A stretch of DNA of 64,000 nt from Octopus sinensis (Eukaryota): assembly GCF_006345805.1 (NCBI RefSeq), contig NC_043022.1, forward strand, positions 496,001 to 560,000, written 5' to 3'. Made by a program: the position numbers and the translations under genes. The notes beneath the pieces were generated by a model, which worked only from the letters and a program-made list of their open reading frames with translations, made no database searches and was not told the DNA's origin. Positions 52,901 to 57,213 of the stretch are shown here, piece by piece (the first letter of the stretch is position 1; every line of letters starts with the position of its first letter).

Positions 52901-55367
52901 AAATGTGTATATATATATATGAGTGAGTGTGCACAGGTGCATATCCAGATATATGTACTTATATACATAATGTGTATATATAAAACCTATATATGTATGT
53001 ATGTGAGTGTGTGTACCAATATATATATATATATTTATACACACACACACCCTTAAACCCACCCACCAACACACACACACACACATACATATATATATTT
53101 TATATATATATATATATATATATATATACACTTTTGATTGAGTCAGGCTCTTGCTGTTCTAATCTTCACCTGTATGGACACAGGACTCACAACCCGCCTA
53201 AAACTCTTCCAACCCTCCAGGTGAAACTCAGAGTAGCAAGAGAGTGACTCCACCAAAATAAAATTCCATTAAGCTCTACCATGTTATTGAGCACTCCTTT
53301 TTTTTTATCTAAACGGATAAATACTATATCTATGTATGTATGTATGTATGTATGTACTATATTGTATTGTATTATATTCTGTGTATATAAGTACTATATA
53401 TACACGTATAATGGATATTTGAGATCTCGATAGGACTACAATCCCGTTTCTCACTCCTGTTGGATTTACTTGGATGCAGACTCCAACAAATAGATAGATA
53501 GATAGATAGATGAGTATGTACGTAAGTGTGTCAGTTTTTATTCGCAGTGTATGTGCGTGTGTGTCTGGGTCTGTGTGTTATCACTCCGTTTTCCTTCAGT
53601 GCCGGAATAAACGAACGCCAAATCCGTTATTCAACCAATCGTGTTCGTTAGCTGCTACTACGTTTCACGAAGTCGTCTCTATTGATTGCTGCTTTTACCA
53701 AATTCTATCGACGTCGTACTTACTCTATTAATTCTTCAGACGTTGCCATCGTTTTTTCTTCCTTCGTTCTTCCACCGAAATGTTGTCTGCGTTTCTTTAC
53801 TATTTCTACCTTCTTACACGTCTGTCTCTCTGATCTATCTATCTATCTATCTATCTATCTATCTATCTATCTATCTATCTATCTATCTATCTATCTATCT
53901 ATCTATCTATCTATCTCTATCTACCTATCTATCTATCAATCCATCTATCAATATGTCTATCTATCAATCCATCTATCAATATGTCTATCTATCAATCCAT
54001 CTATCAATATGTCTATCCATCTGTCTATCTATCTATTTATCCACCTACCTAACAGTCTATATATATGTATATATATATATATCTATCTAACTATCTATTT
54101 ATCTGTCTATAAGTCTATCCATCTATCGATCGATCTATTTATCGATCTATCTATTTATTTGTCTATCTATTTATCTATCTATCTACCTGTGTGTGTATGT
54201 ATGTATATATTGCTATTTGCATATCTTTCTACATAGCTATCTATCTATCTGCCTACCTGTCTATCTGTATATTTATCTCAATTTACCTATCTATTTATCT
54301 TTGTACCTGTCTGCCTATTTGTCTGTCTGTCTGTCTGTCTATTTAGCAAATGTATACTTTTATACGTTCGGATTGACCAATGCGTAGTGAGTGCAATTTT
54401 GTAGACGAAAAATGTACGGAAGCCTGTGTCACACACACACATGTTTATATAAGTACACACATTTTCATACGCGCAGGCCTCAGTGTGTGTGTGTGTGTGT
54501 ATTGACATTTGTTTGACCTGAGATTCGACAAATTGAGAACCGATATAAAAAGTCACCATGCTTTAAAGCAAAAGCTGCGTTTAACATGGTCGACGACTAA
54601 ACCACAGGGGGCGGTGCCTCCCCGTGTCTACAATCCAATGACGGATAGCAGTAAAAGAATATAAATATTGAAGAATATCTACATGAATATGGATGTGCAT
54701 GCGTTATTGTCTGTGTCTCAAATCAAAAGACGTTTCTTTTCTTTATAATCTATATCTGTTTGTTCTTATTTTTCGCGTGAGCTTTAGGTCTTCGTTCGAT
54801 GTCTTTTCTGTCGCAAGATTTGTCTTTGTTCTATGTTTTAACCCGATTGCTTTTCAGATGTGCGATAACAGAGATTTTCCAAGCGCCGAAATCATACTGA
54901 CTCTGGATAGAAGTCGGCTGATGAAGCAGATTTAGCCATGCATGTTTCATATATTTTTTTTCTCCTTTCCGTTAATTTCTGTACACGTCCTCTCCCATCA
55001 TACATACAACACACACATACACACATATATGCGCACACTCACAGACAAACACTCATATAATATATATATATATAATATATATATATAATTAATTAATAAG
55101 GGTGAGAGAATTAGATACTAATTTAATAGTATATTTATTCAACCCCAAGTGGCCTAGTGCTACGAGAAACCTGGATTATTATAATATTTTATAACATATT
55201 ATAATATTTTTACAAATAAATATAAGAGAGTGGTCACTATATTGCTCACTCTAGCACCATTAATCCAAACGTTTTCAACCACAAAATACATGATTCCCAT
55301 GAAAGCCAGTACGACTGTTAGCTCACACGGACAGGGCAAGTTAAAAAATACAAAAATACAGATTATT

Positions 55368-55439
55368 TTGGGACAATTGTTTCGCTATTAGAATTAAATG
55401 TAATATTACTACAAAAACCATTTGTAGCTCGTCAGCCAA
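55368..55439 (-). ncRNA. Type I hammerhead ribozyme (inverted copy)
   Basis: Minus strand TTGG-CTGACGA-GCTA..TAGC-GAAACAATTGTC-CCAA. Confidence 0.8.
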
Positions 55440-55794
55440 GACTATCTGGATGAAATCCACTCAATCACAACGCCAGATTTTACCATAACGATAAATACGC
55501 GTGTGGTTCAATTGATTACATCCGACGTTATAATTCAAATGCCCCAACCCACAGCGCGCCAAACTTTCAAACTTTCACGAAAACAAATACAGCATTTAGA
55601 AATAAATGCAGCATAATTATAATTAATTAATAAGGGTGAGAGAATTAGATACTCTAATTTTAATAGTATATTTATTCAACACCAAGTGGCCTAGTGCTAC
55701 GAGAAACCTGGATTATTGTAATCAATTGAACCACACGCGTATTTATCGTTATGGTAAATCTGCGTGTGATTGAGTGGATTTCATCCAGATAGTC

Positions 55795-55871
55795 GTGGCT
55801 GACGAGCTACAAATGGATTTTTTTGTAAGTAATATTACATTAATTCATTAATAGCGAAACAATTGTCCCAA
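55795..55871 (+). ncRNA. Type I hammerhead ribozyme (plus copy 1)
   Basis: GTGG-CTGACGA(55799)-GCTA..TAGC-GAAA(55856)-CAATTGTC(55867)-CCAA; one stem I mismatch. Confidence 0.75.
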
Positions 55872-56324
55872 AATAATCTGTATTTTGTTATTTTTTACTT
55901 GCCCTGTCCGTGTGAGCTAACAGTCGTACTGGCTTTCATGGGAATCATGTATTTTCGTGGTTGAAACCGTTTGGATTACTGGTGCTAGAGTGAGCAATAT
56001 AGTGACCACTCTCTTATATTTATTTTGTAAAAATATTATAATATGTTTTAAAAATATTATAATATCCAGGTTTCCGTAGCACTAGGCCACTTGGTGTTGA
56101 ATAAATATACTATTAAATTAGTATCTAATCTCTCACCCTTATTAATTAATTATAATTATGCTCATTTATTTCTAATGCTGTATTTGTTTTCCGTGAAAGA
56201 GTTTGGCGCGCTGTTGGTTGGGGCATTTGAATTATAACGTCGGATGTAATCAATTGAACCACACGCGTATTTATCGTTATGGTAAAATCTGGCGTGTGAT
56301 TGAGTGGATTTCATCCAGATAGTC

Positions 56325-56402
56325 TTGGCTGACGAGCTACAAATGGATTTTTTTGTAAGTAATATTACATTTAATTCATTAATAGCGAAACAATTGTCCC
56401 AA
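56325..56402 (+). ncRNA. Type I hammerhead ribozyme (plus copy 2)
   Basis: TTGG-CTGACGA(56329)-GCTA..TAGC-GAAA-CAATTGTC(56398)-CCAA. Confidence 0.82.
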
Positions 56403-56857
56403 AATAATCTGTATTTTTGTTATTTTTTACTTGCCCTGTCCGTGTGAGCTAACAGTCGTACTGGCTTTCATGGGAATCATGTATTTTCGTGGTTGAAACC
56501 GTTTGGATTAACTGGTGCCTGAGTGAGCAATATAGTGACCACTCTCTTATATTTATTTTGTAAAAATATTATAATATGTTATAAAATATTATAATAATCC
56601 AGGTTTCTCGTAGCACTAGGCCACTTGGTGTTGAATAAATATACTATTAAATTAGTAATAATTCTCTCACCTTATTAATTAATTATAATTATGCTGCATT
56701 TATTTCTAAATGCTGTATTTGTTTTCCGTGAAAGTTTGGCGCGCTGTTGGTTGGGGCATTTGAATTATAACGTCGGATGTAATCAATTGAACCACACGCG
56801 TATCTATCGTTATGGTAAAATCTGGCGTGTGATTGATTGGATTTCATCCAGATAGTC

Positions 56858-56935
56858 TTGGCTGACGAGCTACAAATGGATTTTTTTGTAAGTAATATTA
56901 CATTTAATTCATTAATAGCGAAACAATTGTCCCAA
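56858..56935 (+). ncRNA. Type I hammerhead ribozyme (plus copy 3)
   Basis: TTGG-CTGACGA(56862)-GCTA..TAGC-GAAA-CAATTGTC(56931)-CCAA. Confidence 0.82.
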
Positions 56936-57213
56936 AATAATCTGTATTTTTTTGTATTTTTTTACTTGCCCTGTCCGTGTGAGCTAACAGTCGTACTGGC
57001 TTTCATGGGAATCATGTATTTTCGTGGTTGAAACCGTTTGGATTAATGGTGCTAGAGTGAGCAATATAGTGACCACTCTCTTATATTTATTTTTAATATA
57101 TATATATATATATATATATATATATAATATAATATATATAATATATATATATATATATATATATATATATATATATATATATATATATATACATACATGT
57201 ATATCATATATGT

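Follow-up and report, generated by a model that had tools for sequence, protein, structure and literature searches.

An array of non-coding units of about 532 nucleotides (nt), each carrying a hammerhead ribozyme motif, was identified in a 64-kb stretch of the Octopus sinensis genome (assembly GCF_006345805.1, contig NC_043022.1, positions 496,001 to 560,000 of the forward strand; this whole stretch is called the window, and all positions are counted within it). We interpret the locus as the product of a single composite insertion of a non-coding, non-autonomous retroelement, of the type described in metazoans as non-LTR retrozymes (LTR, long terminal repeat), working as proposed below, and assign this interpretation a probability of about 0.68. 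A first-pass annotation, prepared from the letters of the sequence, had described a retrozyme-like system, and all features of a retrozyme that can be checked in sequence were recovered here: a type I core in every unit, the unit size, the lack of an open reading frame (ORF), low GC content, a self-paired predicted circle and a palindromic helix III. The feature is real, yet not of a new kind, as animal non-LTR retrozymes have already been characterised. Their definition and a mollusc precedent are available, with examples from Mytilus galloprovincialis, Acropora millepora and Ambystoma mexicanum (Cervera and de la Peña 2020, PMC7229834).

The organisation of the locus differs from the single tandem concatemer that had initially been described. 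Approximately 1.18 inverted units stand head to head with approximately 2.58 direct units, yielding a composite locus of ~3.8 units flanked by (TA)n microsatellites on either side. Its features, in order of position, are the following.

55055-55087, no strand: left (TA)n-rich microsatellite, abutting the array (Tandem Repeats Finder (TRF) rows and sequence).
55088-55716, minus strand: inverted, 5'-truncated segment of ~1.18 units (alignment and blastn to the unit; inverted repeats I1-I14).
55359-55448, minus strand: hammerhead copy, predicted to cleave after C 55372; core intact, helix II extension eroded; 27.7 bits with RF00163.
55716-55717, no strand: head-to-head junction of the inverted and direct segments, CCTGGATTATT abutting GTAATCAATTG (alignment and blastn).
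55717-57093, plus strand: direct array of ~2.58 units (repeat finding, alignment and blastn to the unit).
55717-55867, plus strand: partial unit P0.
55786-55880, plus strand: hammerhead copy of P0/P1, predicted to cleave after C 55867; helix I weakened by a G.A mismatch (GTGG).
55868-56398, plus strand: unit P1, 531 nt.
56316-56411, plus strand: hammerhead copy, predicted to cleave after C 56398; helix I paired at 11 of 13 positions; 27.4 bits with RF00163.
56399-56931, plus strand: unit P2, 533 nt.
56849-56944, plus strand: hammerhead copy, predicted to cleave after C 56931; ribozyme identical to that at 56316-56411.
56932-57093, plus strand: partial unit P3.
57094-57211, no strand: right (TA)n microsatellite, abutting the array (TRF rows and sequence).

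Read in the sense direction, the inverted segment begins at unit position ~205, includes the ribozyme and stops at unit position ~275-289, its RNA-sense 3' end pointing left into (TA)n. The direct array has its RNA-sense 3' end at unit position ~162, pointing right into (TA)n. The segments are joined at their RNA-sense 5' ends, with the two 3' ends facing outward into microsatellite sequence. The head-to-head junction is asymmetric, unit position ~205 abutting unit position ~382, and the inverted segment displays private insertions and deletions (indels) of its own; this asymmetry and the private indels rule out a simple foldback artefact of sequencing reads or assembly as the origin of the inverted segment. 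The outward 3' ends lie at differing AT-rich positions of the unit, ...UUAAUUAAUUAUA (~275-289) and ...UAUUUAUUUU (~162), and neither coincides with the cleavage site. At the right border, the blastn match to the unit runs on at 92% identity to 57134, and the array end grades into (TA)n. The left (TA)n tract is either a target-site remnant or has grown from the unit's own AT-rich stretch. No target-site duplication is readable within the flanking microsatellite. A second CAATTG-centred palindrome, TCAATTGA, distinct from the helix III palindrome ACAATTGT, is located at 55722-55729, five bases inside the head-to-head junction.

The units simply follow one another head to tail, without LTRs; they are AT-rich and 531-533 nt in length, with a GC content of 33% across the array compared with 40% for the 64-kb window. 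Cleavage-to-cleavage distances of 531 and 533 nt, as given in the first-pass annotation, were found again on the plus strand, and the minus-strand site is situated 495 bp from the first plus-strand site. The longest ORF inside the array comprises 64 amino acids (aa), in agreement with the earlier statement that the units hold no ORF, and we therefore consider the array non-coding; a 94-aa ORF at 57024-57308 begins in the last partial unit and crosses the (TA)n tract into the flank.

All four hammerhead motifs were located by pattern searches. The window contains exactly four occurrences of the 20-mer TAGCGAAACAATTGTCCCAA, three on the plus strand (55852, 56383 and 56916) and one on the minus strand (55368-55387), none being expected from 100 shuffles, and a scan for CUGANGA...GAAA with a closed helix II returned the same four sites plus one unrelated site at 9086. 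CUGACGA, GAAA and a GUC cleavage triplet are present in 4/4 copies, the predicted cleavage-site nucleotide C17 being positioned at 55867, 56398 and 56931 (plus) and 55372 (minus), precisely where complete cores and GUC sites had been reported. The core is complete in each case, comprising C3-U4-G5-A6-C7-G8-A9, G12-A13-A14, the pairs G10.1-C11.1 and A15.1-U16.1, and C17. A full hammerhead descriptor, consisting of a 4-bp helix I, the core, a helix II of at least 4 bp, a helix III closed by A-U and H17, matches three sites in the window versus 0.02 per dinucleotide-shuffled window; the fourth copy escapes it solely because helix I reads GTGG instead of TTGG. As the four motifs are copies of one another, they amount to one independent occurrence, albeit one that is far richer than the descriptor demands.

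The predicted structure is that of a type I hammerhead with unusual helices. In constrained folds the core is surrounded by three helices, of which helix I is the open one, giving type I topology, and the predicted cleavage junction within the unit reads ...ACAAUUGUC followed by CCAAAAUAAUC... after the cut. Helix I, formed by CAGAUAGUCUUGG and CCAAAAUAAUCUG, covers 13 positions, 11 of them paired and two occupied by single mismatches, extending well past UUGG/CCAA and thereby replacing the 4-bp helix that had been proposed. The TTGG strand ascribed to all copies is indeed found in three of them, but the first plus copy reads GTGG and contains a G.A mismatch. Helix II starts with 4 bp (GCUA/UAGC), followed by a CA/AA internal loop and 8 bp; beyond a U-rich internal loop it continues for 5 bp and ends in a hexaloop, amounting to 17 bp overall, such that loop 2 is replaced by a helical extension of ~39 nt. 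This extended stem, likewise described for four copies, is confirmed in the plus copies; in the minus copy, however, helix II is 6 nt shorter, carries one substitution and has lost the 8-bp segment. Helix III is the palindrome ACAAUUGU. Its earlier description as a loopless palindrome that folds poorly alone was correct with regard to the palindrome and its weakness, although a monomer can form 2 bp closed by an AAUU loop, whereas a dimer gains 8 bp. Two ribozyme copies, those cleaving after C 56398 and C 56931, are intact and identical. For comparison, canonical metazoan type I hammerheads have a helix II of 4 bp and a helix III of 1-2 bp with a palindromic loop of 2-4 nt, and are active as dimers (PMC4209133).

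The fifth core-like site at 9086 was rejected as a chance match, given that the other foldback arm at this location reads CTGAAAA and that helix I is absent. It belongs to a ~90-bp inverted repeat (8885-8975 and 9085-9175) around a short hairpin-forming centre, resembling a foldback element or a miniature inverted-repeat transposable element. One arm of this 8885-9175 foldback, CTGAAGA...GAAACAGCTGTA, mimics a hammerhead core together with a palindromic helix III.

The Rfam model Hammerhead_1 (RF00163) aligns end to end with the octopus motif, scoring 27.4 bits for the plus copy and 27.7 bits for the minus copy (E ~2-3e-5 in searches of ~120 nt), below the gathering threshold of 34 bits. The shortfall is explained by the insert of ~39 nt in loop 2. 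No hammerhead was reported by Rfam in the 64-kb window at the gathering threshold, nor in segments of 2.4 kb or 571 nt at E <= 10, as the filters discard the match in these larger searches. Neither strand of the unit gave a match to a further ribozyme family. Routine Rfam annotation would miss this hammerhead.

Folding with ViennaRNA was used to compare monomeric, dimeric and circular forms, single hammerheads being represented by a 102-nt segment. The active monomer fold is predicted at -19.0 kcal/mol compared with -24.6 kcal/mol for the minimum-energy fold, in which the core GACGA pairs with UUGUC at the cleavage site and both are hidden. When two copies combine into a double hammerhead, in which helix III becomes an 8-bp intermolecular duplex and helices I are made in trans, the fold reaches -49.2 kcal/mol, versus -38.0 kcal/mol for two active monomers. 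According to these models, dimer formation would remove the energetic penalty on the active state; thermodynamics alone is nevertheless not decisive, because an alternative inactive dimer folds at -53.0 kcal/mol. Experimental precedents exist for such behavior: an axolotl hammerhead of like kind shows poor cleavage as a monomer but cleaves well in dimeric constructs (PMC7229834), and the same holds for Penelope-like motifs (PMC4209133). When folded as a circle, the unit has a minimum free energy of -139.5 kcal/mol compared with -108.7 +/- 5.5 in dinucleotide shuffles (z = -5.6), and 66% of its bases are paired. For the antisense strand folded in the same way, z = -4.8.

Sequence divergence among the copies points to a common and recent origin. 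Where the first-pass annotation spoke of near-identical units, alignment yields 96-97% identity between direct units and 93-96% to the inverted segment, the differences being mostly short indels, many of them in homopolymer runs. Nearly all variants are private to a single copy, at ~1-2.6% per copy by manual count, with one ambiguous shared variant in a T-run; few variants are involved, and assembly errors may account for some of the indels. This star-like pattern, in which the branches are of comparable length, is what one would predict for units generated simultaneously from a single template, whereas stepwise duplication or unequal crossing-over should leave variants shared between neighbours. 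Changes in helices I and II among the four copies (93-97% identity) are disruptive rather than compensatory. In octopus repeats, a Jukes-Cantor distance of 0.09 has been calibrated to ~25 million years (PMC13282606); by this measure the insertion would date back a few million years, provided that the differences between copies are real.

In most respects the locus resembles metazoan non-LTR retrozymes. It shares with them non-coding tandem units with one type I hammerhead each, a low GC content (33% here, where the criterion is below 45-50%), the lack of LTRs, primer binding site and polypurine tract, a strongly self-paired predicted circle, and a weak palindromic helix III that implies dimeric cleavage as in axolotl. 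Retrozyme consensus lengths range from 51 to 972 bp and most families hold at most seven units (bioRxiv 10.64898/2026.07.22.740005), and the octopus array, with its unit inside this range and its few units, agrees with both. It departs from known retrozymes in its cephalopod host, a group for which a full-text literature search of incomplete coverage found no description of retrozymes or hammerheads, in a unit longer than the experimentally characterised circles of 170-400 nt, and in its helix II, whose extension of ~39 nt replaces loop 2 and brings the motif below the Rfam threshold.

A second set of similarities connects the locus with Penelope-like elements. These form "partial tandems", an adjacent inverted 5'-truncated copy and complex tandem and inverted insertions (Craig et al. 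2021, PMC8557442), and display an insertion bias toward microsatellites, (TA)n included (PMC8557442). Moreover, a 2014 survey of hammerheads (Cervera and de la Peña 2014, PMC4209133) described motif pairs located on opposite strands at distances of 100-700 bp. The octopus locus matches these descriptions in its partial tandem with an adjacent inverted 5'-truncated copy, its association with (TA)n and its opposite-strand hammerheads a few hundred bp apart, and, as in Penelope-like elements, its type I hammerhead is expected to work as a dimer. Unlike an autonomous Penelope-like element, however, the array contains no ORF for a telomerase-like reverse transcriptase (RT) with GIY-YIG endonuclease, which excludes that identity, and unlike the minimal hammerheads typical of metazoan Penelope-like elements, with a helix I of 4-5 bp, the octopus motif possesses a helix III (2 bp and a 4-nt loop) and a long helix I.

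Newt satellite 2, a hammerhead satellite, has a repeat of ~330 bp. Together with Dolichopoda pDo500 it resembles the octopus locus in its tandem satellite-like repeats, and transcripts of both self-cleave to monomers, for which double- or extended-hammerhead models have been put forward (PMC2837043). The nearest in unit size is pDo500 from cave crickets, with ~500 bp and a double-hammerhead model (PMC2837043). Both satellites are abundant, pDo500 making up ~5% of a genome, and conserved across species, in contrast to the one 3.8-unit composite locus with target-primed-type geometry described here. Plant LTR retrozymes (Cervera et al. 2016, PMC4918200) are similarly non-autonomous and employ hammerhead cleavage for circular RNA intermediates, as the octopus element would; they carry type III hammerheads within LTRs of ~350 bp, have a primer binding site for tRNA-Met and a polypurine tract, make target duplications of 4 bp and exceed 55% GC, none of which holds for the octopus locus. 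Identity with plant LTR retrozymes was rejected in view of the wrong hammerhead type and the lack of LTR, primer binding site and polypurine tract.

On these grounds we propose the following mode of propagation. A multimeric transcript would be made from the ~532-nt unit, and neighbouring ribozymes would pair via the palindromic helix III to form a double hammerhead with helices I in trans. A host tRNA ligase of the RtcB type could close the cleavage products into highly base-paired circles. A Penelope-like RT with GIY-YIG endonuclease would then use the circle or multimer as template, with a nicked (TA)n microsatellite as the site of target-primed reverse transcription; passing around the template more than once would generate tandem units, and twin priming at both nicks would produce the inverted 5'-truncated partner. 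Because the 3' ends do not fall at the cleavage site, where a linear ribozyme-trimmed monomer would end (GUC), the template is more likely to have been circular or multimeric, and microhomology priming of such a template at nicked (TA)n would explain the observed ends. Mobilisation in trans by a Penelope RT had already been suggested, and the insertion architecture lends it independent support; mobilisation itself, like transcription, self-cleavage as a double hammerhead and circular RNA formation, is a step that we infer.

Several observations weigh against this interpretation. Only one locus is at hand: blastn found no further copy of the unit elsewhere in the 64-kb window, and no relatives were retrieved with the exact 20-mer in viral contigs, with two patterns combining hammerhead and helix III in metagenome contigs, or with the translated unit ORF in a protein collection. 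No Penelope-like ORF is present among window ORFs of at least 150 aa, and there is no RT or GIY-YIG match in or beside the locus; the window is repeat-rich, and its RT ORFs are of the long interspersed nuclear element (LINE) type, with Exo_endo_phos endonuclease and zf-RVT. On the supporting side, 31 recently active Penelope-like families have been reported from Octopus vulgaris (PMC13282606). Helix defects affect 2/4 ribozyme copies (helix I in the first plus copy, helix II in the minus copy), the unchanged catalytic core in 4/4 copies is uninformative on selection at such low divergence, and the Rfam score remains under its threshold. The inactive dimer at -53.0 kcal/mol means that the active dimer is not clearly favoured. 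Finally, the flanking (TA)n could be an expansion of the unit's AT-rich stretches rather than a target.

Part of this evidence would also fit an array that is a fossil, i.e., a descendant of a retrozyme or hammerhead satellite whose locus, and perhaps whose family, is no longer transcribed or cleaved and persists as inert repeat DNA. In its favour are the two weakened ribozymes, one with the helix I mismatch and one with the collapsed helix II extension, and the fact that no other copy came from viral contigs, metagenome contigs, the protein collection or the window. Against inertness speak the two intact and identical ribozyme copies, the few-percent unit divergence, which marks a young array, and the unchanged core in all four copies, uninformative as the latter is at low divergence. 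We regard a fossil array as unlikely, though it deserves serious consideration. Growth of a single hammerhead-bearing sequence at the DNA level by unequal crossing-over or replication slippage, combined with a local inversion, would dispense with rolling-circle reverse transcription and derive the (TA)n from the unit's AT-rich segments. This would be in line with both array ends lying in AT-rich parts of the unit, with the 92% match that grades into (TA)n up to 57134 and with the unreadable target-site duplication. It accords poorly with variants that are almost all private to one copy, as stepwise duplication would give neighbour-shared ones, and an inversion would need breakpoints that yield by coincidence the joined 5' ends and outward 3' ends characteristic of target-primed insertion and of Penelope-like elements, which makes this scenario improbable.

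We consider it very improbable that the units are pseudo-LTRs of an autonomous Penelope-like element, whose RT/GIY-YIG part was deleted or lies elsewhere. It is true that Penelope-like pseudo-LTRs carry type I hammerheads and that the tandem and inverted layout is Penelope-like; in Xenopus, a 2026 preprint placed retrozyme families beside such pseudo-LTRs, the two being phylogenetically nested (bioRxiv 10.64898/2026.07.22.740005). The octopus units, however, abut directly and offer no space for an ORF, with nothing above 64 aa open inside the array and no RT or GIY-YIG match in or beside it, and their canonical helix III and long helix I set them apart from the minimal Penelope-like variants, in which helix III is missing. 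The idea that a hammerhead-like motif arose by chance in an otherwise ordinary tandem repeat, or that misassembly created the inverted part, could draw on the fact that four mutual copies count as one occurrence and on the RF00163 score below gathering. Even the loose descriptor yields only 0.02 sites per window by chance, the actual motif adds a helix I paired at 11/13 positions and a 17-bp helix II, and the inverted part, with its asymmetric junction and private indels, does not mirror its neighbour, leaving this explanation barely credible.

Should the geometry of this insertion recur at many loci, it could tie animal retrozymes mechanistically to Penelope-like elements. A bolder proposition is that an active cephalopod retrozyme family exists whose hammerhead, unusual in its long, imperfect helix I and in the ~39-nt extension that replaces loop 2, is missed by Rfam. 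Its insertions, with 3' ends apart from the cleavage site, a twin-primed inverted partner, a (TA)n target and star-like divergence of units, would then be direct structural evidence for Penelope-type target-primed copying of circular or multimeric retrozyme RNA, a link that the retrozyme literature so far could only infer; this we put forward only tentatively and hold to be doubtful. An active family would add cephalopods, whose genomes are heavily loaded with transposons and whose RNA biology is unusual, to the groups with ribozyme-made circular RNAs. It would also contribute a hammerhead variant with a greatly extended helix II, illustrating that real ribozymes can escape threshold-based Rfam annotation. 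As a single locus of a known element class, the array constitutes a useful annotation rather than a discovery.

The remainder of the window contains further mobile elements and repeats. A LINE-type retrotransposon at 35115-39278 (plus strand) is split into several ORFs with gag-like zf-CCHC, Exo_endo_phos, RVT_1 and zf-RVT domains; the nearest named relatives of its RT are proteins of the cuttlefish Acanthosepion pharaonis at 51-53% identity, and the best partial match reaches 79%. An isolated RT fragment at 9884-10444 (plus strand) matches RVT_1 and carries a YADD motif, and a Tc1/mariner-like DDE_3 transposase remnant is found at 26353-26910 (minus strand). Directly right of the array's (TA)n, at 57205-57600, lies a repeat resembling a short interspersed nuclear element (SINE) with a tRNA-like head (GGCGCAATGGCCCAGTGGTTAGGG...), in which ARAGORN called no tRNA. 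Four more SINE-like copies, 80-84% identical, are located at 62251-62437, 50103-50288, 16222-16422 (minus strand) and 29665-29776 (minus strand). A run of exactly 100 N at 21529-21628 marks an assembly gap. Tandem repeats at 2572-3146 (periods of 63 and 179 bp) and 44239-44502 (140 bp) both have consensus units with ATCGACCCCGAAAG-like text and may share a common family origin. Long tetranucleotide and compound microsatellites, including (TCTA)n, (TATA)n and an array with a 62-bp period, occupy 32956-33717, 53821-54300, 52392-52920 and 19997-20340, and the whole window is dense in simple repeats of the TA, TCTA and TG types.

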